NCBI GenBank assembly: GCA_002189035.1
Contig: CM007991.1
Span: 2,356,001-2,420,000, forward strand
Source: Utricularia gibba
Lineage: Eukaryota > Plantae > Magnoliophyta
Direction: 5' to 3'
Length of the DNA stretch: 64,000 bases
In this document: piece after piece, positions 2,575-64,000 of the stretch
Layout: every line of letters starts with the position of its first letter
Numbering within the stretch: position 1 is the stretch's first letter
Translations under genes and position numbers: made by a program
The notes under the pieces: model-generated
What the model was told of the DNA's origin: nothing
The model's input: the letters and a program-made list of their open reading frames with translations, nothing else
Database searches by the model: none

Positions 2575-5528
2575 TCATACAGAGCTCCAACCAGGCTCCA
2601 TCTTATTCACACCTTGTCTTTTCATCGAGTCTCTGATTCTCAATACATCTTCCCAGTCTCCTGATTTAGCATGAATGTTCGAGGCAGAAACATAAGCCCC
2701 AGCATCTGCAGGCTGCAATTCCAGAACCTTTTCAACAGCTAGCTTCCCAAGCTCTTTATGGCCATGGACTCTGCAAGCAGCAAGCAGGGTTGCCCACTCT
2801 AAAGCGATGGGTTCCAAAGGCTTGTTTAGAATGAGGTTTTTAGCTTCTTCCAATCTTCCTGCCCGGCCAAGGAGATCCACCATACAGATGTAATGCCTGT
2901 ACCCTGGTTCAATACCGTATTCTGTTTTCATCGAGTTCAGATGAAAAAGCCCTTCCTCGACTAGACCAGAATGACTGCAGGCAGAAAGAACACCTACAAA
3001 TGTAGCTGCATCAGGCAGTATTCCTGAATTTTTCATGAGCTCAAATGATTCCAAGGCCTCTGATGCCTTTCCATGATGGCCGTAGCTCACAATCATAGCC
3101 GTCCAGGCAACTAAGTCTGGGGAAATGATGTTCTGAAACACTCTCAGGCACTCGCTAGTGCTACCACAATTTGAATACATTGTTACAAGTGAACTTCCTA
3201 GGAAAGATTCTGATTCTAGGCCAGCTTTAATCACATGACCATGCAACTGAGTACCAATGCGTGATTCACCTGAGACTGCTAGTGCAGAGATGATTGATGA
3301 TATTGAGAAGGCATCAATCCTCATATCAGAACGAAGCATGCCAATGATAAGTGTCAGAGCTTCATCGATGTTACCCGCTTTGGTTAATCCAGAGACTAAG
3401 CAAGACCTTGCCACCTGACTTTTGAAAGGCATCATATGGAATACAACTCTTGCAGATTTGAGATCAGCACATTTTGAGTACATATTAACAAGCGCTTCAT
3501 CAGTAATAGAATGCTGCGCATATCCACCTCGAAGAGTGAATCCATGCATTTCTCTCCCCAACTTCAAGTAACCCAGCACCGAGCATGCATTGAGAACAGC
3601 TGATAAAAGCTTTTCGTCATGAATTAATACCTCACCTCGCATTTCATTAAACAAGTCAATGGCTTCTTTACCAAGCCCATGTTCTACAAAACCCGCAATC
3701 ATTGAGGTCCATGAAACATAATCTTTGTTCTCGAGTAGCTCAAAAGCTTTCAAAGAGTTCCCCAAGTAACCACATTTTGAATACATCATGCAAATTGAAC
3801 TACCAACAGAAACCTCTGAAGCCAAACCAGCTTTAAGAATATAACCATGTACCTGGGTCCCAAAATACAAACAATCTATTACACTCAATAAAATGGAAGC
3901 ACTGAAGCTGTCTGGAGTCACACCATTTTTCACCATTCTCTGAAAATAAAGTGCAGCTTTATCATTGTGTTCTGAGTCGACAAATGCAGAAATCATAGTG
4001 GACCATATACCCGATTGGGTAAGGCTGTGAGACTCAGTAAATACTATTTCTGACAAATCGATCCTTCTAGCTTTTGAATATGCATTTATCAGCGAGGCGT
4101 TCACCACAGGATCGGAATGAAGGCCTTTCTTCAAGCTCCAGCAATGGACCTGTAATGCTTCTCCAATCATAGATGGATTAGCACAAGCAGCAAGCATGCT
4201 TGAGACAGTGAATTTATTTATGTCCTCTCCCAAGTTTTGCATCTCTTTGAAAAACCAAACAGCAGATGCTGAATCACCCTTCTGCGACAAACCAGAGATA
4301 ATGGCACTCCATGACACGTTATTGCGTTCTGGCATTAACCTAAACTGTTTAAGAGCATCATACAGGCAACCACATTTGGCATAAAAATCAACAATGGTAG
4401 TCCCCACAAAAATATCAGCTCCATCACCAAATTTGATCACTAGTCCATGAACGCTATCACCCAATTCAAGATTCTTAAGTGCAGCACATGCAGTGAAGAC
4501 GCTTGAAAAAGTAAATGCATTAGGGACCAGGGAGTCATGGCGATGCATTTGGATGAACACTTCAAGTGCAAGCCAGTCATTATCGCTCCTAACTGCTCCC
4601 GTCACTAGAGAATTCCAGCAAACAACGTTAACACACTCGATATCATGGAATACTCTCAAGCAATCCTGCATCCTGTTACACCTTGAAAACAAATCTATCA
4701 TCCCAGACCTCACATAACCATCTGAAAAGAAGCCATTTTTCAAAACGAATCCATACACTTGCTCCCCAGAGAGGGCACACAGCAATGCACAGCAAGAGGA
4801 AAGTACGCTACCATAAGTGAACGCATCCATGTCTACTCCCCTTCTGTGCATTTCAACAAAAACCCTCCAGCAATCATCAAAAAGAAATCTTTTATTGCAG
4901 CCAGAAAGGATCAAGTTCCACGTTACTGGATTGAAAAACGGAATTTCTTCAAGGATCATTAATGTATAATGGATGATGCCAAGTTCTGAGTAGGCCTCAA
5001 TCAACTGGTTTCCGGTGGATAATTCGGAATAAAGAATGCCACTTTTCAGTAAACACGAGTGCACTGCTTCGGTTTCCCCAAGTGTCAGACCTCCCAACAA
5101 TGCGGGGCCCTTAGCAGGGTAAAATGGTTATCCCTTGCACCGCTGTCAGCACATTCTTCAAGTATCGGGATACCGGTTGTGGCAGGCGACCTCCAGCCCT
5201 CGGATTCCCAAAACGGAATTTCTTCGAACAGGTTAGACGCATAATCCAGGCGTCCACATTCTGAGTAAACCTCAATCAAATGGTTTCTTGTGTGGATGTC
5301 GTAATCCAAGATACCACATTTCAGGAAACAGGTATGCGCTGATTCGGCTTCCCGGAGAGTTGGCCGCATCCCACATGCCGAATTGGTGCGCGGCAGCATA
5401 TGATGGCCCGTATTTGGTGTAGCATTGCGAGGAGTTCCAGTTGGTTGGATTTGGCATGAAGCGGCAGAACTGGTGAATTTCCGATGAGTATAACAACCGA
5501 CATGCCGCCAAATTCTTGTGCGAGGCAT
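2575..5528 (-). CDS. OTP87: PLS-class PPR protein, E subgroup (editing factor, At1g74600/OTP87-like); intronless, one apparent frameshift at ~5104-5107
   Basis: 841-aa ORF of PLS repeats ending in an E domain ...MEPGWSSV, like At1g74600 (KEPGWSSV). The ORF starts at TTG and has no early ATG. The upstream ORF (ATG 5528, MPRTRIWRH...) joins in frame if the G4 run at 5104-5107 is G5. Confidence 0.85.
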
Positions 5529-8913: not shown

Positions 8914-9507
8914 CATTATTTAATTTAACGTAAAACCCTAAAAATTCAACTTCCAAAACGAATACTATCCGTTGGAGAAGCGACCACCACTTTTGGGTGA
9001 TGGTGTGCGGTTACCGGTTTCAAGAAGCGGGCGAAGCGAAGGCAAAACCCCCCCGTGTTGTCTCATAATTACGAGCTAATCTATCTATCTATCTATCCTG
9101 TCAGCCTGTCCCTGGGTCGCAGTTTCCGATGCTGATACCATGCTTTATTATTTAAGCTGCTATGTGGAAAATGCTCCATGGTTTCGGGTTTCAAATGGAA
9201 CTGGGGTGGGGTGTTGATGATGATACTCTCTCTCTCTCTCTCCGGTAAAAATCATGGGGAGGCAAAAGAGTTATTAATTGTGCACTTAATCTTTTTCCGG
9301 TATGCGTAAATGATATGCATGCATGAGGACGTTTTCAATAACCATAATAATAATAACGTCGCCATGGGACGGCGCATGAGCACGATCTTCGAGCACTAAT
9401 TCCTCATAATTGCCTCCTTTCCCCATCTCCCCTCCCTCCCTTTTATTCACCTACGTTTTTTTTATGTTGTTTTGCTTTTGTTGTTGTTTCACGTACTGGA
9501 CGCTGAG

Positions 9508-10659
9508 ATGGAGACTTCTCCTCCGCTGTTGAGCATGCCCATGGCTCTGCAGGATTACCAGGTGCAGGAGTATGAACAAGTCTTCGCCTTCCCGCTGCTT
9601 TATGATTTCAGGTACAGTTGAAGGGGGTGGGGTGGTACGCTTTGATCGGAAGCTTTGGTTCGTAACTATGGCTTTTGGCGCGTCTGTGTTGATAGTGATT
9701 CTGGGCTTCATGACTGGGACTTCTACGGTGGAATAGGAACCCTGGATTTACTGCTCACTGATGATGCTCCTTCTTGCCACCCACAAGGTTAAACTTTTTG
9801 TTTTTTAATTCCTTTTCTTTTTATTGGCATGTGCTGCAGTAGTAGTCGATTAAAGTTTGGAAATGGGACTGTGCGCAATTTCAGAGGGTTTTCTATGGGA
9901 TTCGTCGCTGTGGGAGGATATCAACTCAGCTTCTTCGCAAAAGCAGCAGATGACGCTGAAGAGCAGCGGTGAAGACGGGGCGAAGGGAGGAGAATCACCA
10001 TGCCCTGAAAACCCGATCGTGGGTAAAAAAACGAGTAGACGAGTGCACCGCAAAGATGAGACTAGAGCCTCGAGGCTGTCCAAGGAGATGATTTCGCAGT
10101 ACTTCTACCTTCCCATCGCAAAAGCAGCAGAGGAGCTGAAAGTGGGAGTCACGTATCTGAAGAAGAGGTGCAGAGAATTAGGAATCAAGAGGTGGCCACA
10201 TAGGAAGCTGATGAGCCTTCAAACACTGATCCACAATGTGCAGGTTTGGCGTCCCTCAACTCCGGCAATGTGCATGACACATATATATAAAGGCTTGTGA
10301 ATGTTTCATAGGAGCTTGGGAAAGAAAGAAGAGGGGTGCTGGGTGACGAGTACACACACATTTTGGAGGAAGAGAAGAAGCTGATGGAAGAGATTCCCGA
10401 TCTGAGACTGGATGACAGGACGAAGAGACTTCGGCAAGCTTGCTTCAAGGCAAATTACAAGAAGAGGAAGCTGATGGGCATGGCGGTTTCCTTCCCTAGG
10501 AAGCCTTCGAGCTCCAACCAACAAGTGGATGCCATTGACGAGGGCCATGTGAGTTCGGTTGGGTCGACAGGTGCAGAAGTGGACGATGAAGAGATCAAGT
10601 GTTTGATAGAAGGCTTCTGTTCGTCTGCTTCATCAGACGTGGAGCTTTTGAAGTATTAG
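9508..10659 (+). CDS. RKD: RWP-RK domain transcription factor, RKD subfamily; 5' exon structure uncertain
   Basis: [48 protein letters not shown] (RWP-RK), a 68-nt intron 10244-10311, then the RKD motif [16 protein letters not shown]. Putative exon 1 at 9508-9611 splices in frame to 9856. Confidence 0.88.
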
Positions 10660-17417: not shown

Positions 17418-19370
17418 CTAGCCATGTAAAGAGTCACTAACCTTGGAAGCAGATTCAAAGTCAGCCATATCCTGATATCCTCTCATGAGCACCTCATCGA
17501 TGAAAGCATTTGGCAGCATTGCGGTCTTCAGCATATCTGCTTGCAGCATCATCACTGGAGACAATTGCCCGGCTGCAAAGTGCTCTTGGATGATGGCAGC
17601 ATAGAGGTATGCGTCCGGCTGGACGAACTTTCTCATGTCAGAGAAGAACTTGCTGGCTTTGGAAACTTGCCCCTTTTGGCAGAGCGCATTGATCATTGTG
17701 GAATATGTCACAGTGTTTGGGATACAGGAGGGCTGTGCGTCATGTCCCATCTGGTCATCTCCTTGGGTAGCAGAGGATCCGGTTTGTTCCTGAAAAAACT
17801 TGATGGCTTTGTTGGTCCTTCCATCTCCACACAGCCCGTGGACTACAGTGCTAATGGTATAATCATTAGGAGGGACACCGGCGGATACCATATCTTTGAA
17901 CAGTTTCATAGCAGCGTCGGTGTAACCAGCTTTGAAATGTCCTGAAATCAGACAAGTATATGCAACAACATCAGGCTTCAAGCCTTTTATCATCATTTCG
18001 TTGTAGAGTCCCATGGCAATCTCCAGCTTCCCAATTCGACAATAGCCATTTAGCAGTGTGCAGAAGGTAACTATATCAGGTTGCAATTGCTTCTCCATCA
18101 TTTTGGAACAGACTTCCATAGCTTTATCTAATTTACCCCGCTTGAGGTTACCATCAATTAGAGTGTTGTAGACCACCACATTTGGTTCTATGCCTCTATC
18201 ACTCATCTCGGATAACAAACTCTCTGCTTCTTCAAGTTTACCGCTCCTGCAATACACCTTCATGAGTATGCCATATGTTACAGCATCTGGAGAAACATCA
18301 AACTTCTGCATCTCCATGTACATATCCATGGCAGCATATGAGTCACCCCCTTCACAGAGTGCATCTATTAAGCAATTATATATGTATGCATTTGGAACAA
18401 CATTAAGCTTCAACATGTGTACAAAATAGTTCCTGAAAACTGTCAGCTTGCCGACTCTGCAAAACAAGTACATAAGAATACCGTAGGTAATACAATTAGG
18501 AAGCACTCCTCGATCCAGCATTTCATAATAAACTCTACGGGCTTTCTCAAAGCTGGATGTCTTGGCATACCCATCCATTAAAACATTGTAGGAGAAGAGG
18601 TTTGGGGTAATTCCCTCATCCTGCATTCTCATAAACATTGCCTCTGCTTCCATAATCATATTCCCTCTGCAGAGTCCTCCTATCAGTGTTGTATATATTA
18701 CAACCGATGGTTTCAGTCCCCTCTCACTCATCTCATTGACCAGCAAATCAGCCTTCTTGATGCCTCCTTGGTCACAGGAAGCGTGAATCAATATACCATA
18801 AGTTATAGCACTAGGCACTAAACCATTCACTTTCATGTTGTCATAAGCCTTCCACATACAGTCGACCTGGCCTGCCTTTAAGAGACCATTCAACAGCACA
18901 TTACAGGCCTGCACAGCAGGCAACTTTCCCATCTTCTGGAACACCCAGTACCCCTCATTGGGGAAACCCTTTCGGCATAAAGCAACCATCAACAGCTCAA
19001 AAACGTCATGATTACAGTTTGATCTCTGAAATCTACTCAGAGAATTGAAAATCGAGGAACAAACTTTGTGAGGCGCCCATCTTCTTCTCAAAACCTCAAT
19101 GAGGCATTCTATCGAACACCTTGCCTTCACGTACAACTTGGCAGAGGTTAGGTAACAAATGACAGCTGAATGGACATTTATCGTCTTCTCCGGACTTACC
19201 CCTCTGGTTGCTGTGTTGAAAATCGATAACGCGTGTCTTGTCGTTGGGGAATTCAGAATTGCAAAGACTGCATCATGAGAAGGCACACGAGATGCAGATG
19301 CTGAAAAGCAAGCTAATGCAGAGTTGGGGATGGTTCCAGGCGTGGTCTTCGGCGGCAAAAGCTTCAACAT
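17418..19370 (-). CDS. P-class PPR protein (At5g61400-like), intronless
   Basis: 650-aa ORF with a tandem array of 35-aa P repeats (for example PSVVIYTTLIGGLCR, PDIVTFCTLLNGYCR). Confidence 0.93.
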   Translation of the reverse strand: MLKLLPPKTTPGTIPNSALACFSASASRVPSHDAVFAILNSPTTRHALSIFNTATRGVSPEKTINVHSAVICYLTSAKLYVKARCSIECLIEVLRRRWAPHKVCSSIFNSLSRFQRSNCNHDVFELLMVALCRKGFPNEGYWVFQKMGKLPAVQACNVLLNGLLKAGQVDCMWKAYDNMKVNGLVPSAITYGILIHASCDQGGIKKADLLVNEMSERGLKPSVVIYTTLIGGLCRGNMIMEAEAMFMRMQDEGITPNLFSYNVLMDGYAKTSSFEKARRVYYEMLDRGVLPNCITYGILMYLFCRVGKLTVFRNYFVHMLKLNVVPNAYIYNCLIDALCEGGDSYAAMDMYMEMQKFDVSPDAVTYGILMKVYCRSGKLEEAESLLSEMSDRGIEPNVVVYNTLIDGNLKRGKLDKAMEVCSKMMEKQLQPDIVTFCTLLNGYCRIGKLEIAMGLYNEMMIKGLKPDVVAYTCLISGHFKAGYTDAAMKLFKDMVSAGVPPNDYTISTVVHGLCGDGRTNKAIKFFQEQTGSSATQGDDQMGHDAQPSCIPNTVTYSTMINALCQKGQVSKASKFFSDMRKFVQPDAYLYAAIIQEHFAAGQLSPVMMLQADMLKTAMLPNAFIDEVLMRGYQDMADFESASKVSDSLHG

Positions 19371-29300: not shown

Positions 29301-31018
29301 TGCACATGAAGTACAACATCAGACGCACAATCTTCAAATGTGTGCATATCCAAGTCAGTGCTCAAAACTTCTTCATGGCGATTTCCAGTATCTGAAGGAC
29401 TAGATTTAACTTCGAGTTTTTCCAAATCCACCTTACTATCTGTTCCATCAACAACATTACTGAAAATCTCTTCAGCCTCAAAAAATTCTTCAGGTGCGGC
29501 ACCTTCTGTTTCATTGCTCTCTTCAACCCCTGATGCTTCAGTTGGAAGTATAGAAGGTACTGAATGAGCATCTGAAAAGAGTACCTGATAAAAAAATGTA
29601 TTTTCAGCTACTAGAATTACATATACACGAAAAAAAAAAAAAACCAAGACAAGCACATAAGCCACTATGTACCTCAGCCCGGAATTCCCTGGAAAATTGG
29701 TCTTTCGCATCCCATAGCACATCAACTTCATCCCGAATCAGAGTCAACACATTAGTACGAACAAATGAAGTATGAAACATAATCCTGAATATCATCTCTT
29801 CCCTCACCAAATCCTCCTCAAAATGGATGCACTCTAAAACAACATCTCCTTGGATGCGACAATATATGTTGATTTTTACCAGTTCACATTCCTCCTGCGG
29901 CCATAAATCATATAACACATAATCTTTGAGTTCAACGCACATATTCTAGATCAACCAAGACACCCTTTTTGAAGTAAATACTGAATTATGGCATTACCTG
30001 CTGGTAGAAACGGATGTTTTTTGGCACTTTAGAAGTGGAAAACAAAAGCATTGAACTTCGGTTGGATGCTAATGAAGAGGGATCCTGACCATATACACGA
30101 ATAACTGGTCTACATCCTCTTCCACCATCATACAGGGGAATGTTCCTAAGCATGATGCTGTCTAACATAAGAGGTGTATCAGATGGCGCTCTATCTGACC
30201 CAGCACTGTTTCTTCTTGATATGTACTGAAGATACCTAAGCTGGGATGGCTGGGGATTCAGGGGAGACAATAGATGAAGAAGCTCCCTGGGGGCTTGCTT
30301 GTATACCATCTCAAGGGTCTTCTGCTCGCCAATATATTGTTTTCTGTACAGAAGAAGAGCTGCAAGCATAAATGCTAGCACGGGCCACCCTCCCCTTTCA
30401 CAGTACATCAGAAGCACATTTTGCTGACCCTCAAGCGACAACCAGCTCTCACTTGAACGTAAAAAGTGGTGGATCATCTCCAGTGGCAAGAGAGGGCATC
30501 CTTCGTACTGTCGTGGATAATCCATCACAGTCATATCATACTGAGACAATACATCTGACAACTGGCTTCTCCTATCGCCCTCCTTAAAGTTAAAAACCAT
30601 AAAAGCAGCATCAGGATAGTGATCCTGTAGCTGTGCAACAATTCCATTCATGTAACTTCTGTACTCATCTTCATCGAGAACATCAGTAGAGAAGCAGCAG
30701 TCGAACACTGTACACAATCAAATGATGTTGGTTAAAAGTAGCGTTCACTTCTTCGCGTTTTCTAATTCTATATATGTAATGAGGTTACACGGATAAGAGA
30801 AAGAGCCGGGGAAATGTATGAACCAGTAAAAACTAAAACTGCCCCACAAGTATAAGTATAAAACAAGGAACTCAACTGCCGGTCCAAGTCTTAGCAGTTG
30901 AAATTCGCTGCAAAAAAAAGAACCAAACTAACAGCTAATTCATACCGTAGACCCTTTCAGAGATCTCGAGAAGCCGATCCGGCGGCTTCCGATAGAAGAA
31001 CCGTCTGAACAGCGCCAT
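23348..31018 (-). CDS. FH20: Class II formin (PTEN phosphatase/C2 + FH1 + FH2; AtFH20/OsFH5-like); six apparent 1-nt deletions in FH1
   Basis: Exon 1 MALFRRFFYRKPPDRLLEISERVY (31018-30946), VFDCCFS...LMYCERGGWPVLAFMLA, C2 exon (GDVVLECI...FRIMFHTSFVR), poly-Pro FH1, then FH2 exons (LKPLHWSKVTRVVQGSLWEE, RRANNTEIMLTK, LGNTLNQGTARG, FVKLFQKAHEEN). Confidence 0.92.
27500..28480. repeat. FH1 coding tandem repeats (45-bp VPPPPPPPLPGGSRVA units and ~39-42-bp GGPRAAPPPPPPP units)
   Basis: Near-identical units such as GGAGGGACTGCTAC(C/A)CGAGAGCCTCC and GGAGCTGCTTTTGCACCCCAGGAGG recur on the + strand. Confidence 0.9.
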
Positions 31019-31928
31019 CTAAAGGCGCTGTATTCCCTGATCAGATCCACAACCCTTACTCGAGAGAGCAAAGCAGCAGAATTTCACCTAAATTCCACTC
31101 AATTAACTAAAGATCTTCACAGGTCATCGGTCACCGCCAGAAATGCTCGCGGCAAGAATCATCCAATAGCAAAGCCAGACCAATTCCAACCCGGAAAACG
31201 ATTCTGACCACGCAAAAAACTTAGTCACCACCTCAGGACCAAATAGCCGAACCAGCACAAAAATCTGAATCAAAAGAGGCTGCTTCAGCAAGAAAGACCT
31301 GAACAGCACTCGAAATACAGAATGCCCCGCGAGAATCACGTATTTAACCGAGAGGTAAAGCACGGCGAATCAAAACCTCACCCTGCTCAACACACGACAG
31401 AAAACTACTAGTCAGACGAGAGCAGCAGAGAAGCAAGAAGAAAAATAGTGGACGGTCTCGTTCGGTACAAGCAAGCCCCGCTCAACCCGACCCGACCCGA
31501 TCCGAATATCCCAACCGATTTCAAATATTAGTATTTCTTTCAAAAAGAAATCCAGAAAAATAAAAACAAATCATAGTAAACAGACCATGTGATTGGCCTG
31601 CACTTCATTTCTATGTATTATTGGCATCCCTATGTTTAATGGAATGATTCATACAAAACAAACAAAATTGAAATTATATGGTTCAATTTCGCATCTCAGT
31701 ATTTAAAAAATTACGAATCATTCATTATATAGATTAAATGACATTCAATATAACCAAGATTGAATGATTTTGGAGGTTGATGATATTCATGTTTTCAAAA
31801 AAAATATATTAGAAAAATGTTGGTGGCTGAACATCCTTTTTGATGACACGTGTCCCATGACCAAACAAGTAATCCGGGTGGATATTGCCATAATTTAAAG
31901 GGGATTACTTCCATTGGAATTGATTTGT

Positions 31929-33890
31929 CTATTTGGCACCATGTAACCTGTCAAGTATCCTCCATGTTGCAGCATCTGGTTTCAGGCCATTGCTCCTCAT
32001 GTCGCCGACGATCTGATAAGCCTCTCTTTTGAGGCCCAGCTTGGCGCAGTAGTCCAGAACGATGTTGTAGTTCACGTTATTGGGACTGATCTCAAGCTCT
32101 GCCAGCTGATGCAGCACATCGAAGGCCTCATTCAGCCTCTCTGCTGCGCACAGACCTTTGAGCAGAGCTGAGTAGACAAAGCTGTCATGCTTCCCTGATA
32201 CCAACACTACGCTTTCCCACAGCTTCTTAGCATCGTCTACCCGGGAATGCGAACATAAACCGTCGATGATGATGGCGTAGGTTCTGCAGTCTGTGGAGGA
32301 CGCGGCCATGTTTTCTAACATGTTCATAGCTTCGTCTACTCGGCCGTTTCTGAACAGCCCACCGAGTAGAATGTTGTGAGTAACAGTTGAGGGAGAAATG
32401 CCGTGCCTGGGGATGAGATCATTCCAATACTTGAAAGCTTCTTCTACGTTTCCTAGATTCAGGAATCCTTGGATGATGGTGGCGTAAGTCACTTCATTTG
32501 GAGCACAGAATTTGCCCACTGTCATGTCGTTAAGCACCTTGACAGCATCTTCTAATCTCCCAAGTTTGCAGAATCCATTGATGACAGTGTTCAGGGTAAT
32601 CACGTCCGGCTGACACTGTGAATGAAGCATCAAGACAAGTACATTTAGGAGCTCCGTGGGATTGCTCATCTCACAAATGGCTCTCAGATAAATGTTGTAT
32701 ATCCTTGTCCTGTTGACACCTTCCTTGCACAGCATTGTGTTTAAGACTTCCTTGGCTTTGGCTAGATCGTGTTCACGGCACAGGCCACGGACTAAGAGAT
32801 TATAGGTAAATTCAGAGGGGAAAAACCCAATCTGCTTAGCTTCTTCAAGTACCTGGAATGCGCGCAAAGGATCGCCATCATTGCATAAACCATGCACGAT
32901 TGCATTGTATGAAACGAAGCTGGGAGTAAAACCCCTTTTTTGCATTATGTAGATGATCCTGGCAGCACCATTATACCTTCCAAATGCGCAAAGAGAATCT
33001 ACCATCTGCCCATAAGCAAATTCTTCATCAACATTCTTGCCTTGGGGCATATTCTCTGCAATCCTGAAGACCTCATGAAACAAACCTTCTCTGCACAAGT
33101 GCTGCATCAAGTCACAAAAGGCTGAATTGTTCACTTGCAGATCCTTCTCATACTCCATAGCCTCCCAGATCTTCGAGATCAAATTTATCCCATTTTCCAA
33201 GTCTCGTCTTCTCAAAACACCTGAAAGAAAAGTAGAATATGTCAAAGCATTTGGACGGAGTGCCCTCTCAGACATTTCGTCAAACAGCTTTTCAGCAGAC
33301 TTCACATCTCCAACTCCACAGTACCCATTGAGCAATGTAGTATATGAAACGGTATTTGGACTGTGTCCTCTCATCATCATGTGATACAGCATCCAGTGCG
33401 CTGATTCCAATCTCCCAAATTTGCAGAACCCATCAAGAAAACGATTGTAATTCGAAATCGAGGGCACAAACTCGAACTTCTCAGCAATAAAAGCGTTTAC
33501 CAAGCGTAGCGTGTTGAAAGGATCACGCCCTTGAAGCAACCGCGCCATGAGAATATTGCAAGTCCTCTCATCAGGGACGCAGTGGGAAGAGATAAAATGA
33601 AGAAACCATTGGTGGGCTTCTGAGAAACGGCCGGCGTCGCAGAGAGCATGGATGATGCTGCTGACATTCAATGTCTCCGGCTGATATCCGCGGGAGCGGA
33701 GCTGGTGGAGGAGGCGGAGAGCGGCATCAACATCACGGTCTTCCGTACAGAGAAGGTGGATACGTCTAGTCCAATGAGCCACGTCACTTGCACTAAAGAC
33801 ATCAACTTCAATCGGCTGTTCCGCTGCAGCAAGGATCTCTTTCCGGGAAAAACACAGAGTTCGCCATGACCCAATTCTCAGAAGACGCAT
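31929..33890 (-). CDS. P-class PPR protein (At3g18020-like), intronless
   Basis: 653-aa ORF. WTRRIHLLC...PDERTCNILMARLL...RTRIYNIYLRAIC...PDAATWRILDRLH matches the At3g18020 family. The N-terminus may be extended by the upstream exon at 34092. Confidence 0.92.
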   Translation of the reverse strand: MRLLRIGSWRTLCFSRKEILAAAEQPIEVDVFSASDVAHWTRRIHLLCTEDRDVDAALRLLHQLRSRGYQPETLNVSSIIHALCDAGRFSEAHQWFLHFISSHCVPDERTCNILMARLLQGRDPFNTLRLVNAFIAEKFEFVPSISNYNRFLDGFCKFGRLESAHWMLYHMMMRGHSPNTVSYTTLLNGYCGVGDVKSAEKLFDEMSERALRPNALTYSTFLSGVLRRRDLENGINLISKIWEAMEYEKDLQVNNSAFCDLMQHLCREGLFHEVFRIAENMPQGKNVDEEFAYGQMVDSLCAFGRYNGAARIIYIMQKRGFTPSFVSYNAIVHGLCNDGDPLRAFQVLEEAKQIGFFPSEFTYNLLVRGLCREHDLAKAKEVLNTMLCKEGVNRTRIYNIYLRAICEMSNPTELLNVLVLMLHSQCQPDVITLNTVINGFCKLGRLEDAVKVLNDMTVGKFCAPNEVTYATIIQGFLNLGNVEEAFKYWNDLIPRHGISPSTVTHNILLGGLFRNGRVDEAMNMLENMAASSTDCRTYAIIIDGLCSHSRVDDAKKLWESVVLVSGKHDSFVYSALLKGLCAAERLNEAFDVLHQLAELEISPNNVNYNIVLDYCAKLGLKREAYQIVGDMRSNGLKPDAATWRILDRLHGAK

Positions 33891-34004
33891 TTATCGGTTT
33901 TCAACGATATATCATTTCCTCGTTCTTCATGAACAGTCATCTGCAAGCCCAAGTCTTCCGATTTACGAAGTCCAAAACCCGTCCACAGCAAAAAGCACGA
34001 AAGG

Positions 34005-34137
34005 AACAGCTAAAATCATACGGTGGCATTCGGATCCCTAAAAGGCGATCCGGCAGCCTTCGAGAGAAAAATCGTTTCAACGCCGCCGCCATGCGAAGAC
34101 GCTATTTTCCCGGATTAGATCCCCAACGACAACTTAC
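34005..34137 (-). repeat. Diverged duplicate of the formin 5' UTR + exon 1 + intron-1 donor (other copy at 30930-31059)
   Basis: 32/41 nt identity over the stretch ending in ATGGCG and 37/51 over the coding part (MAAALKRFFSRRLPDRLLGI vs MALFRRFFYRKPPDRLLEI). Donor GTATGATTTTAGCTGTT vs GTATGAATTAGCTGTT. Confidence 0.8.
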
Positions 34138-35024
34138 CAACGATGCAGTAACATAATACAGCGTTTATACACTATGTATTTTATGCAGACTACATTTATA
34201 TAGTATACAGTTGAGTTGTAGAATGAGTATTACATGAATTTAGATTGTTTGAATATTTTCTTTGGTGAGTTTGGCGCTTAGAGCTGTTACGTTCCCATGC
34301 CGCGTGCCGACCGTTTGATGAAATGCCCAAGTGTAGTTTATGACCTCTTATGCTCTCTGGCTTGTGGTGGAACCTTGTGGTCTCATCTCTGTGGTTTTTA
34401 AATATCATGCTAAACCTAGAAATGTTAGAAACTGAGTTTTTGTTAATTGATGGAGTTTGTTGGAGATTGTTAATAAACATTAGCCCTTGGGATGTAAGAA
34501 TACTTGGGAGGAGGAACGAGAGATCACTGGAAAGAGTAGAGACAATGTGATTAGCGAACTGTGATTCTTTGCTTATACAATGAAACATGATCTAGTTAGC
34601 CATGTGGTTGCCTCCCTTTTGTATGTGTGTTGTGTACTTTATACGGATGTTGGTAAATGAATTTTGAATTTCAGGTGGTGGTGTAGCCAGCCACCTCGAG
34701 GAAGCCCCCTAGGAACAGAGTATTCGTACACTACTGTGCCTTGCCACTTTTGCTTGTAAATAATGAGCGAGTAGCTTGGTTCTATCAGGGGGATCTGTTG
34801 TAGAAATTCCATGTGTGATAACTTGATCTTTTGAATCAGTTACTAAGAGGGCTTTTGTTCCTTAGGACACCGCTGCTCTCTACTTAGTTCTCTCTTCTAT
34901 TTTGGTTTTGTGTTAAAAGAACTGCGGGTGGAAAACGACCTGATGAATACCCAAGCTGCCTAAAACGTATGTGCGATCACACACTGGGAGAAATATACAG
35001 AATACAACAAGACCAGGAAATTTA

Positions 35025-38000
35025 TCAGCAGCCACCTTGCAGAGGTTTAGATGATGCTTCTTGTATGTAGGCTAATGCCTCCTCCTCTGAGAGTTGCTTC
35101 CCTTGCACCAACCCTTGAATCAATGTATCAGAGTAATCTTTTGAAGGCGGATTCACCGGAACCCGGCCACAGATGAAGCTATCGATATCTGAGAGTGTGC
35201 ACCTGAGTGCAAATATTTACATAGGAATCATGGAGTAGAGAGTTCAGCAGTCTGCAGCATTAGATAGATGAGGGGCGGCTGAGATCTAACAAGGCACTTA
35301 CGTCATGGTGAGAACTGGCAAATCTTGTTCCTCCCCAAGTAAACAACGTTTCTGTACCAGCCACTCTGTACACGAGGAGGAGTACAACAACCAATGAATG
35401 TTGTAAGCATGCTCTGGGAAAAATGGGTGTTTACTGAGTCTCAGATGGTGTAGAACTGACCTTGAGTGATTCCACTGTGATTTGCTTTTCTGTCTGCAGA
35501 GTCTGCAATGCCGCAAGGTCGATGAGGGGGCTATCGAAGCTAGCAATATTCTCTTGAAGCAGGACATCGTTGAATTGTTCAAGCCTAAAGAAAAAAGAGA
35601 AGTTGCTTGTTTCTGATTGAAATGTGAGTCTTAGCAACGAAAAAAAGGAATAGTGAGCGCATACGTGATTTTGTACAGGCACATGATGGCTTTATCCTCT
35701 GCGTTAGCCGAGGGGTGAAGAAAAGCAACACCTCCAAGACCCCATGTTGCAGTCCTTTCACGAGCAAAGAACAAGCGATGAGGGAAAGTTTTCCACATGA
35801 TATCTTTAGGCATGCTCTTGTCCCTCGAACCTACAGATGACCTTTTCATCCCTATCATCTGGAATATACACGAGAAAGGTCTCAGGACAAGCGAATTCAT
35901 ATGGAATGCAGAATCAGAGATACTCTACCTGTCCACCTTCTATGTAACAGCGCAGCCTTGATGCATTCATATTCGACCCATAAGTTGCATACCAGACATT
36001 AACTTTTGAGAATTCTGAACGCCATGAACACAGAGCAGAATCTACTTCTGTGTCTGCAAACAATCAACAATGCATTCAAGAAGGTACTCCCCTAAATGCC
36101 CTTGTTCCTTGTTGTGGATTAAAAATCAAATCTCTTACTACCTTTAATTGCTCCAACGAGTTGAAGGCCTTCGAGAGGTCTCAAAACATCATCAATATTC
36201 TATAAAAAAATCGACCATTTTTAATCAGGGAATGAATACTTATTAAGTCAATGATTGACATACTTATTATTGATAGATAACATACATTTCATGACCTTGA
36301 CATGGTGAAAAATGAAAATAAGTAGATGATTGAGAATAGTTACATCAAACTGCCGTGATTCATCAATGAATTCCTCATCTGTCACACCAAGAGTTGGCCA
36401 ATATGAACTTAGTTCCCTACGCACCTAACAAATTTTGACAGTTGAAGAGGACCATTCAACTACTCAGAAGTGAAACGATTCAATTAACTATTACCTGGCG
36501 GATAACTCGCCATGTGGATTCAAGAGGATTGTTTCCCCTAGGCTTAACAAGAGGTATCTCCTCTAACAACACTTGCACACATGCTTCTACTGAAGCTGAG
36601 ATGGAGTCAAGATTGTATCCTCCTTCAAGGGCCATGACGATTTTTCCTCCAGAAAACTCCATCAACTATGGAAGGTAGAAGGATAATTTAATATGGTAAA
36701 CGCGGAGGAAAGCAAAGGAGAGAATATGAAAAAAAGACATCAGATAGCACACGATTTCATTAACTGATTCATTTTCTAACCTTCTGAAGCATAATGGAGT
36801 ACCCCAAAGGAGTGACTAGACAGCCTCCCAAAGGATCTCCTAGGGCTGATCAAGTTCAGACAACGAAAAATATTCATAAACCATCAGCTGTTTCTCAGTT
36901 AAGTATAATATTGCATTAACGAGGAACATATTTCACTAGGAGGGTTAAGGGATGTAACCATGCCAAATCTACTATGATGAATGAAGTCTGAGGGAAATGC
37001 TATTGACAACGGTATAATTCAAGTACAACAAGACATCCAATACTTGTAAAAAGTGCAAAGAGGGGAAGTCAAATAGAAACCACAAACCTGCATCAAAACC
37101 AGCTGAAATAAACACCATGTCAGGATTGAATTCCTTAGCAACAGGGAGTAATATGTGATCCCAAACCGCCAAATAGTCAGCATCTCCATGGCCAGGACCC
37201 TCCCAAGGGACATTAATATTATATCCAGCTCCCGAACCTTGTCCAGTCATTTCATATGAACCATCATCACCACCAGGATAGAAAGTCCCAAAGTCATGCC
37301 TAATGAAGGATAGAGATAATGGCATAAAAATCATAATATGACATCAAGACAATTATTTCACATATATGCCCGGAAAATTAAACAAAAAGTGGAAAATTTC
37401 TACTTCAAAGAATCATGATATTTCATATAGCTTAATTCAACCAGTAGACATTGAACTAAATAAAAGCATCAGCAATTGAGTACCTTCTACTAGATGCAAT
37501 GAACTGAAATGATACATGAGATACGGCTGTCATTGAAGACAATGCGAATAAATGAAAGGCATAGTTTACAGAAGCACAATTATTCCAAAATATATATTTC
37601 TGTTTTGTGATTACATCATCAGACTGGAATTGGAAATTCTCATACCTATGAACCGAGAAGAAAAGAACTTGAGGATCATTGTAGAACATCTTTTGTGTTC
37701 CATTTCCATGATGCACATCCCAGTCAACAATCAGTATCTTCTTGATTCCCAATTCTTGCTACAACACGTGAGATAGTAAAAGAGAATGCCAAATTGCCAT
37801 GTTTCCAGAACTAAGTGAATTACGAGAAAGTTACTCACTCTTTTGTTTAACAGATAACTAGTCGCAACAGCAACATTGTTATACAAGCAAAAGCCCATTG
37901 GTTGGGTTTCCTCAGCATGATGTCCAGGAGGGCGAACAATAGCAAAACAAGAATTAAGTTCACTTTTAGCAACCTTCTCCATGGCCTATTAGGAATTTGC

Positions 38001-62504: not shown

Positions 62505-64000
62505 ATGCGGAAGCCCTTGATTTCTCTATTGGCGCACTTACGGCAATGCCTTGGCAGCATCGCCGCAGGTCCCAATTCGTTGAACCGATCGATTTCTACG
62601 TATCCGTCCTCTATTCTTTGGAGGGAGCCTCTCCGGTGCGCTGTGTATAAGAATCCCTTCCGCGTTGCTCATACCCAACCCTTCTCCGCCAGCGCAAAGC
62701 TTTTGTCTGATAAAGTCTCGGGATCTTCTGGTGGTCAGAATCAGGAGGAAATAGGAGAAGAAGAACATGCGTTGGCGAGGCTTCTTTCTAACGAGCTCTT
62801 GCGATCGCCGGAAGCGGAAACTCTCCCGTTGCCCAAAAGACTCGACCTTTCATTTTCTCATGTTACTATTAGGCCCACCTTGCTGCTTGCAACGCTCAAC
62901 GTTTCCCCTGATGCGGGTCGTGTGGCGCTTGATTTCCTCACGTGGGTGAAGTCAAGGCCGGGCTTTGTAGCTACGGATGAGGTTTACTCTTACTGGGTAA
63001 GTTATTTTGGGAGAAGGAAGGATTTTAAGGCGATACATGATGTTCTTGTTGATGGCCGTGGAGTCGTTGGGGTGAAATGTTTCGAAGCTTTTGTTGATCG
63101 GTTGGTTCGGGCCGGAAGAGCGAGTGACGCCGTCGCATTATTTGGTAGGATGAAGAAAGATTACGGTTTTAAAAAAGATATGAGCTCTATGAAGTTTATT
63201 GTTTCGAGTCTCTGTGAGCGAGGATACGCCAGCTATGCTGAAAAGATGGTTAAGAGTCTGGCTAATGAGTTCTTTCCTGATGACTACATTTGTGATGCCT
63301 TGATCAGTGGTTGGTGTGTAGATGGTAAGTTAGAGGAGGCTAGAAGATTAGTGAATGAGATGTCCAGGGGAGGCTTCGAGATAAGTACATTTGCATATAA
63401 TTGTCTTCTAGACTGTGTTTGTCGGCTTTGCAGACAGAAAGATTCCTTCCGGCTTGAATCTGAGACGCAGAATCTGTTGATTGAGATGGAAAGAAAGGGT
63501 GTTCCCCGCAATGTGGATACCTTTAATGTGCTGATTACCAACTTATGCAAGATGAGAAAAACAGAGGACGCAATGAAGCTGTTTTCCAGGATGGGGGAAT
63601 GGAGCTGCCATCCCGATGAAACTACATTTATCGTTCTAATTAAGAGTTTGTATCAGGCAGCTCGGACAGGGGAAGGTGATGAGATGATTGATAGGATGAA
63701 ATCCGCTGGCTATGGAGATGCTCTAGATAAGAAGGTGTATTATGAATTTATTCGTATTTTGTGTGGAATTGAAAGATTCTACCATGCTTTGAGAGTTTTT
63801 GAAATGATGAAAAGGGACGGTTGTCAACCTGGGATTAAAACATATGACCTCTTGATGAAAAAACTATGTGCTCATGGACGTTTTAACAAGGCGAATGCAC
63901 TTTACAAGGAAGCTGAGAGCAATGGATTACCTGTTGAGCCAAAGGAATACAGGGTGGATCCTAAGTTTGTTAAAAAGAAAACTGTGGCTGTGAAGAAGGA
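62505..64000 (+). CDS. PNM1: PPR protein PNM1 (nucleus/mitochondrion-localised, mitoribosomal rPPR; At5g60960-like), runs off the right edge
   Basis: Not in the ORF track because it has no stop in the window. Open frame from ATG 62505: MRKPLISLLAHLRQ (presequence-like)...YFGRRKDFKAIHDVL...LIKSLYQAARTGEGDEMIDRMKSAG...YRVDPKFVKKK. Confidence 0.9.
   Translation, partial: MRKPLISLLAHLRQCLGSIAAGPNSLNRSISTYPSSILWREPLRCAVYKNPFRVAHTQPFSASAKLLSDKVSGSSGGQNQEEIGEEEHALARLLSNELLRSPEAETLPLPKRLDLSFSHVTIRPTLLLATLNVSPDAGRVALDFLTWVKSRPGFVATDEVYSYWVSYFGRRKDFKAIHDVLVDGRGVVGVKCFEAFVDRLVRAGRASDAVALFGRMKKDYGFKKDMSSMKFIVSSLCERGYASYAEKMVKSLANEFFPDDYICDALISGWCVDGKLEEARRLVNEMSRGGFEISTFAYNCLLDCVCRLCRQKDSFRLESETQNLLIEMERKGVPRNVDTFNVLITNLCKMRKTEDAMKLFSRMGEWSCHPDETTFIVLIKSLYQAARTGEGDEMIDRMKSAGYGDALDKKVYYEFIRILCGIERFYHALRVFEMMKRDGCQPGIKTYDLLMKKLCAHGRFNKANALYKEAESNGLPVEPKEYRVDPKFVKKKTVAVKK

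Follow-up and report, generated by a model that had tools for sequence, protein, structure and literature searches.

A partial copy of a formin 5′ end lies unspliced in the messenger leader of a neighbouring PPR gene in Utricularia gibba

What becomes of the start of a gene when it is copied in front of another gene? This question is raised by a locus on contig CM007991.1 (assembly GCA_002189035.1) of Utricularia gibba, in a stretch of 64,000 nt (positions 2,356,001 to 2,420,000 of the forward strand) that we call the window and whose own numbering is used here. An intronless pentatricopeptide repeat (PPR) gene lies about 3 kb upstream of a class II formin gene, both on the minus strand. An earlier interpretation, made from the letters of this DNA alone (the sequence-only reading), proposed that the PPR gene took its promoter, and possibly a mitochondrial targeting peptide or a regulatory upstream open reading frame (uORF), from a partial duplicate of the formin 5′ end. 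Such a duplicate does head the PPR gene, and it is carried unspliced in the leader of the PPR messenger RNA (mRNA), where the former formin start codon opens a uORF. Of the proposed consequences only this most modest branch, the unspliced uORF, holds.

Window positions 34137–33937 were found to be a partial duplicate of 31059–30872, collinear and in the same orientation. The copy, its parts and its source are as follows:

33937..34137, minus strand: copy A, a partial duplicate of the formin 5′ end that lies within the PPR 5′ leader and appears to be decaying (alignment score 82 against a shuffle maximum of 33; sharp 5′ edge)
34093..34137, minus strand: part of copy A from the last ~41–45 nt of the formin 5′ untranslated region (5′UTR), 31 of 41 positions identical (76%) to 31059–31019, including a common GTAAG
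34022..34092, minus strand: part of copy A from the coding sequence of formin exon 1, 71 nt against 73 nt in the formin, 50 of 68 positions identical (74%)
33937..34021, minus strand: part of copy A from the start of formin intron 1 (~75–85 nt), kept in the PPR mRNA; 26 of the first 31 intron positions and 18 of 22 in a further block identical
30872..31059, minus strand: copy B, from which copy A derives, within the functional class II formin gene; it comprises the end of the 5′UTR, the coding part of exon 1 and the start of intron 1

Local alignment of 34600–33700 with 31500–30600 (both minus strand) returned a single match, 34127–33990 against 31053–30915, whose score compares with a mean of 22.0 and a standard deviation of 2.5 in 300 dinucleotide-preserving shuffles; blastn gave E = 4e-13 and no third copy of the formin-derived segment within the window. 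The shuffle test thus bears out the homology at the place and in the orientation that the sequence-only reading had given. The copy is somewhat longer than the 34137–34005 described there: after small indels, a further collinear block (33958–33937 against 30893–30872; score matched by 8 of 500 shuffles) extends it to TTGCAG/ATGA at 33941, and the formerly intronic part as a whole is about 83% identical to formin intron 1. Upstream of 34137/31059 no similarity was detected (score 15 against a shuffle mean of 18), so that the 5′ edge is a true breakpoint. The significant homology, reaching into both the UTR and the intron flanks, marks copy A as a gene fragment copied at the DNA level. Its first 20 codons are in frame with the formin (MAAALKRFFSRRLPDRLLGI vs MALFRRFFYRKPPDRLLEI), and indels of 1, 1 and 3 nt break the frame in the last five codons of the former exon. 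The splice donor GTATGA was copied too (at 34021), with C at donor position −1 where the formin has G. The peptides and the donor had been described correctly, as had the TAA that stands immediately 5′ of the PPR start codon at 33890 and a 51-codon uORF at 34092–33937.

Is this fragment transcribed, and with which gene? Five RNA runs of the same organism contain 58–85% of sampled words of 33895–34215, and four of these runs, from two studies, were mapped as Logan contigs onto 30000–35900. The four runs behave as RNA: in all of them the formin intron (joint 30707/30946) is spliced out, as are three introns of the gene upstream of the PPR gene, and depth is zero at 31576–31772, in the gap that separates the 3′ end of the PPR gene from the 5′ end of the formin. 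Contigs of run X1 (32974–34339) and run X3 (33748–34128), both joined to PPR coding sequence, cross copy A without a joint, and a separate contig of run X2 (33919–34183) likewise covers it without a joint. The depth of leader words is similar to that of the coding sequence (20 against 18.5 in X1; 4.5–5.2 against about 5–7 in the other runs), and none of the four runs has an assembled contig with a joint at 34022. Since contigs pass from the PPR coding sequence into and across the copy with no splice, copy A is part of the 5′ leader of the PPR mRNA, and the copied donor at 34022 is unused in every assembled form. The sequence-only reading had asked whether the PPR transcript might start downstream of 34005, leaving the copy untranscribed; the contigs reach 34128–34339, upstream of that point. 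Of the three outcomes it had envisaged, the unspliced uORF of 51 amino acids is the one seen, and the two splices from 34022, to 33941 and to 33877, are absent from the four runs, all of which splice the homologous formin donor.

Within the leader downstream of 34183, to which our map of upstream ATGs (uATGs) is limited, the following starts and frames were read:

33937..34092, minus strand: uORF1, which begins at what was the formin start codon (context cttcgcATGgc) and has 51 codons before its stop
33878..33940, minus strand: 20-codon uORF overlapping the PPR ATG out of frame
34154: uATG opening 6 codons
34029: uATG in frame with the uORF from 34092
34019: uATG opening 18 codons
33930: uATG opening 9 codons
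33915: uATG in frame with the uORF from 33930 (4 codons)

The copied formin ATG in a transcribed leader constitutes a uORF upstream of the PPR main ATG. uORF1 ends 44 nt before that ATG, and its stop codon TGA overlaps the uATG at 33940 (ATGA). The +4 base is G at the 34092 ATG and C at the main ATG, and neither has a purine at −3; the uORF1 peptide had no Pfam match. An association with nonsense-mediated decay (NMD) and poor translation of the main frame is known in plants for uORFs longer than about 35 amino acids and for those that overlap the main AUG (PMC3315328). By this general behaviour of plant uORFs, translation of the PPR protein is likely damped, and its mRNA is possibly sensitive to NMD.

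The recipient gene is the following:

31929..33890, minus strand: intronless P-type PPR gene, a single open reading frame of 653 amino acids with start codon 33890, by sequence the ortholog of At3g18020 (PPME)

Its product matches Pfam PPR_2 (E = 1e-115) and proteins named At3g18020 from Amborella to Lamiales (45–63% identity, ~95% coverage), the best being those of Sesamum, Salvia and Primulina (62–63% identity); these matches identify it as the ortholog of Arabidopsis At3g18020 (PPME). PPME is an intronless mitochondrial P-type PPR protein gene required for nad1 editing (PMC4962808), and its product is predicted to be mitochondrial (PMC3858439). The N terminus, MRLLRIGSWR, aligns from the first Met with those of Salvia (MYLWRIRSGR), Primulina (MRPWRIQPWR) and Sesamum (MRLSKIQLWR), and the DNA around the ATG (AAATGCGTCTT...GAGAAT) is conserved with the orthologs as well. 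This conservation with the Lamiales orthologs shows that the gene has retained its ancestral start codon and its own presequence, so that no borrowed one is needed. The targeting peptide supposed to come from the formin is thereby contradicted, the splice to 33877 that would have supplied it being unobserved. Nor does the lack of introns point to a recent insertion of the PPR gene, which the sequence-only reading had assumed and hoped to date: because At3g18020 is likewise intronless in Arabidopsis, this state is ancestral and no sign of recent retroposition.

Two weakly supported joints were noted inside the PPR coding sequence, 33005–33086 (skipping 80 nt) and 32849–32974 (skipping 124 nt). 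Each comes from one contig of one run, has GT..AG on the minus strand and a short side of just 25–28 nt, and may reflect rare cryptic splicing or an assembly artefact. Other PPR genes of the window (17600–18950, 63250–63940 and 2800–3080, paralog matches by tblastx to the Lamiales PPR loci) have no formin-like leader.

The source of the copy is a working gene, with these parts:

30946..31420, minus strand: formin exon 1, a 5′UTR of ~400 nt and 73 nt of coding sequence (contigs X2 30946–31415 and X5 31081–31420)
30708..30945, minus strand: formin intron 1, 238 nt, GT..AG (joint 30707/30946 in all four RNA runs)

Exon 2 matches Pfam PTEN_C2, which places the formin in the class II, PTEN-domain type. 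Its ATG lies at 31018, and the donor follows directly after 30946. The exon 1 peptide MALFRRFFYRKPPDRLLEISERVY is the canonical N terminus of class II formins as seen in 28 representatives from other plants: it is identical to two of the 28, and the others differ only at their variable positions. With its canonical N terminus, splicing and expression, the formin is the functional, ancestral parent copy. Its transcript starts near 31415–31420 according to the RNA contigs, ~360 nt upstream of the point (31059, 41–45 nt before the ATG) where homology to copy A begins. No promoter or transcription start site (TSS) sequence was therefore copied, and nothing upstream of 34137 is formin-like, so the promoter capture envisaged in the sequence-only reading falls away. 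A candidate promoter element of the PPR gene itself lies upstream of the copy:

34195..34202, minus strand: TATATAAA motif, candidate core promoter element of the PPR gene, read in the sequence and not formin-derived

The X2 contig stops at 34183, near this motif, and X1 contigs extend further upstream, with weak coverage to about 34620. Run X1 stems from a different accession, with small indels at 34126 and 34149 and ~0.5% single-nucleotide polymorphisms across the PPR coding sequence, and has at 34620 a 51-nt loose end without match to the window. Its coverage reaches ~400 nt beyond that of the 2020 runs in the upstream direction, which may point to an additional upstream TSS or to a structural difference.

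Outside this genome, the last ~45 nt of the class II formin 5′UTR (GTTGTGGATC.GATC.GGG ... TAGATGGCG, with TAG right before the ATG) are conserved among U. gibba (31019–31059, minus strand), Forsythia ovata (comparison locus L005, 9960–10000) and Centaurea solstitialis (locus L004, 16985–17026 and 9960–10000). The remainder of the 5′UTR and the intron are not conserved among the three, and the block may be a non-coding leader element of these formins. In Centaurea (CM058040.1; L004 10001–18575) the 5′ region of the gene is itself duplicated, with class II formin exon 1 at 10001 and 17027 and the PTEN domain at 10442 and 17871; it is annotated as one protein of 752 amino acids, and an additional fragment lies at 9133–9204.

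How old is the copy, and is it maintained? The start of the formin intron shows no similarity to Forsythia intron 1 and yet resembles copy A closely, so that the duplication must be much younger than the split between Lamiales families. Copy A and the adjacency of PPR and formin genes were absent within ±10 kb of the PPR orthologs in Salvia (L001), Primulina (L002) and Sesamum (L003) and of the formins in Forsythia and Centaurea. No common neighbours were found at ±10 kb in these five comparison loci, whose genomes are larger, making 10 kb a short reach. A weak AT-rich blastn match (39 nt, E = 0.007) between the region upstream of the copy and that of the Sesamum PPR gene was not used. No exact match to the PPR protein is on record in public assemblies, and a search for fragments from close relatives with its first 150 amino acids returned one Sesamum match only (65%).

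The codon lists reproduce the 6 synonymous and 8 non-synonymous differences between copy and formin counted in the sequence-only reading. As the formin peptide represents the ancestral state at every position among the 28 representatives, all eight non-synonymous differences lie on copy A, whose peptide differs from the formin at 6 of 19 aligned residues. The even identity of UTR (76%), coding (74%) and intron (83%) parts and the broken frame fit neutral decay of the copy; weak constraint may also be compatible with data from 19 codons.

Taken together, these results make the following history probable. A genomic piece of ~200 bp from the class II formin 5′ end, running from the last ~45 nt of the 5′UTR through the coding part of exon 1 to ~80 nt into intron 1, would have been copied into the PPR 5′ region ~3 kb upstream in the same orientation. 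Because the copy includes intron sequence, its template would have been DNA or unspliced RNA rather than mature mRNA, and because its edges are sharp and transposon ends are missing, a locally templated patch during break repair seems the most likely source event. Templated insertions at repaired breaks do occur in plants, although those seen in experiments are mostly much shorter (PMC5217109). Today the copy belongs to the PPR mRNA leader and is unspliced, so that the old formin ATG opens the 51-codon uORF, and the PPR protein, judging by orthology, still starts at its own ancestral ATG and keeps its own N terminus. The former UTR, coding and intron parts of the copy decay at about the same rate, presumably with no selection on the peptide; the likely outcome is less PPR translation and possibly NMD sensitivity.

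Several points weigh against this history or limit its reach. Logan contigs are unstranded and drop rare variants, so that a minor spliced isoform or a uORF-free TSS further downstream is possible, and they do not fix the PPR TSS, ending as they do at 34128, at 34183 and at or beyond 34339. Repair as the mechanism of origin is deduced from this one genome, and repression by the uORFs from their sequence and the general behaviour of plant uORFs. With Forsythia as outgroup, the copy branch carries ~5–6 synonymous and 8 non-synonymous changes, a nominal ratio of non-synonymous to synonymous rates (dN/dS) near 0.4, which on 19 codons is indistinguishable from 1 and yet no proof of neutrality. Finally, the X1 accession has six variants in 34126–34284 and none in 33891–34125, where ~3 would be expected (P about 0.05, in a post hoc test on six events), and this contrast could hint at constraint on the uORF region.

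Other routes by which the copy might have arrived were considered alongside local templated repair. A retrocopy was rejected, given the ~80 nt of intron 1 in the copy and the lack of flanking direct repeats beyond chance. A fragment captured by a transposon (Pack-MULE or Helitron) was rejected likewise, with no bracketing repeats and no other copy in the window: neither inverted nor direct terminal repeats bracket copy A, around which only short, chance-level inverted repeats occur. A 15-nt similarity between the flanks of the PPR start and the uORF start (33881–33895 and 34095–34109) is at chance level for an 8-mer seed, and Rfam gave no match over 30500–34700. The main alternative for the origin is that copy A is all that deletions have left of a complete formin paralog, either a tandem copy or a whole-genome-duplication homeolog, with the same function at present. 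The partial tandem duplication of the class II formin 5′ region in Centaurea provides a precedent, and the nominal dN/dS near 0.4 could stem from an initial phase in which the copy still worked as an exon. We nevertheless hold such erosion to be unlikely: both edges of the copy are sharp, no further trace of a formin occurs between 33937 and 31929 or upstream of 34137, and two precise deletions would be needed, with the PPR gene landing exactly inside the remnant. Comparison of flanks across species spoke for neither origin: the regions upstream of copies A and B, aligned with those upstream of the formins in Forsythia and Centaurea, scored at shuffle level, as did the introns against Forsythia intron 1.

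The present role of the copy can be read in other ways, too. A leader co-opted by selection, in which the formin-derived block (5′UTR element, start codon and long uORF) determines how efficiently the PPR mRNA is translated or how stable it is, perhaps as in the formin, would agree with the presence of the copy in essentially all assembled PPR transcripts, with the survival of the ATG and of a 51-codon open frame through ~25% divergence, with the conservation of the 5′UTR block in the Forsythia and Centaurea formins, with the lack of variants over the uORF region between two accessions, and with the persistence of a relic in a seemingly compact, gene-dense region. We regard it as rather improbable, since conservation is no higher in the coding part than in the intron part, the frame is broken in the last five codons of the former exon, 6 of 19 aligned residues are lost, the polymorphism contrast comes from six events, and the PPR orthologs of three Lamiales have no such element upstream, which places it outside the conserved PPME design. 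That the block serves specifically as a translational control module of a mitochondrial RNA-editing PPR protein, the PPME ortholog, is a shade more doubtful still. If it were true, how much PPR protein is made, or how stable its mRNA is, would be gated jointly by the conserved 5′UTR element, the inherited ATG, the 51-codon uORF and the overlapping uORF that abuts it, and the descent of a regulatory uORF from the copied start region of a neighbour could be traced at this locus. Very improbable, by comparison, is that the exon copy is spliced, to 33877 to give the PPR protein an Arg-rich N-terminal presequence or to 33941 to give a uORF of 24 amino acids. The arithmetic of both splices in the sequence-only reading is correct: 71 nt joined to the acceptor at 33877 are in frame, an 80-nt intron ending at TTGCAG (33941) would be typical of the locus, where introns measure 80–99 nt, and the formin really uses the GTATGA donor. 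In the RNA, however, joints from 34022 occur in 0 of 4 runs and contigs of X1, X2 and X3 cross unspliced; the C at position −1 weakens an already non-consensus donor, and a splice to 33877 would remove the first four residues (MRLL) of a PPR protein whose Met and N terminus are conserved with its orthologs. An alternative first exon of the formin itself, with the PPR gene nested in a 3.3-kb first intron, can be virtually dismissed and is refuted for the assembled transcripts. Orientation, start codon and donor sequence are those of the real exon, but no run has a joint 34022/30707, depth drops to zero between the genes, and with 71 instead of 73 nt a splice to formin exon 2 would shift the frame.

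Upstream of the PPR gene lies a further gene on the minus strand (34917–36100) that is expressed and spliced (introns of 80–99 nt, 3′ end near 34917–34975), and its product carries a WYATYGSNM motif. Pfam gave no match on the tested exons. It differs from the neighbours of the PPR gene in Sesamum (PP2C, Mlo) and Primulina (S1 domain). In its exon 35300–35365, at window position 35332, the assembly reads GGGG and all four RNA runs, from two accessions, read GGGGG; this is probably a homopolymer error in the assembly, which would shift the frame of any gene model.

How does this locus compare with known systems? Like chimeric genes that recruit a neighbour's 5′ exon, promoter or transit peptide, it has a duplicated first exon and donor upstream of another gene in the same orientation. 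Here, however, no promoter was copied, the donor is unused, the start codon and N terminus of the recipient are ancestral and no chimeric protein results; a chimeric or exon-shuffled gene was rejected on the lack of a joint at 34022 in the four RNA runs and on the unspliced contigs, and an in-frame splice that looked attractive on paper turned out to be unused. With conserved-peptide uORFs the locus shares a uORF long enough for a peptide. The peptide is not conserved and diverges as fast as the adjacent former intron, and this class was rejected too, given that the 10 kb upstream of the Salvia, Primulina and Sesamum PPR orthologs contain no formin-like or copy-like sequence.

A closer likeness is found in the gene-fragment duplicates and filler insertions of plants (PMC5217109), with a short patch whose template lies a few kb away on the same chromosome and which includes non-coding flanks and intron, has no transposon ends and has no poly(A) tail. 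The difference is one of size, ~200 bp here against a median of a few bp there; junction microhomology is not demonstrable here, and the mechanism is deduced. In this respect the event is ordinary: what remains is a decaying piece of a gene that brought neither a new protein nor a captured promoter and gives no evidence that selection acts on it. It would carry more weight only if the uORFs proved to set the level of a PPME-type editing factor. Finally, with the uORF-bearing leaders of plants (PMC3315328) the PPR mRNA shares several uATGs, one uORF of 51 codons (longer than ~35 amino acids) and one uORF over the main AUG. What sets it apart is that the origin of its main uORF can be traced, as the ATG and the first 20 codons were copied from the start of a neighbour. 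The locus thus offers a clean and datable example of the birth of a uORF in one step, in which one gene received in its leader a copy of the start codon and first exon of its neighbour and now carries that copy in its mRNA.

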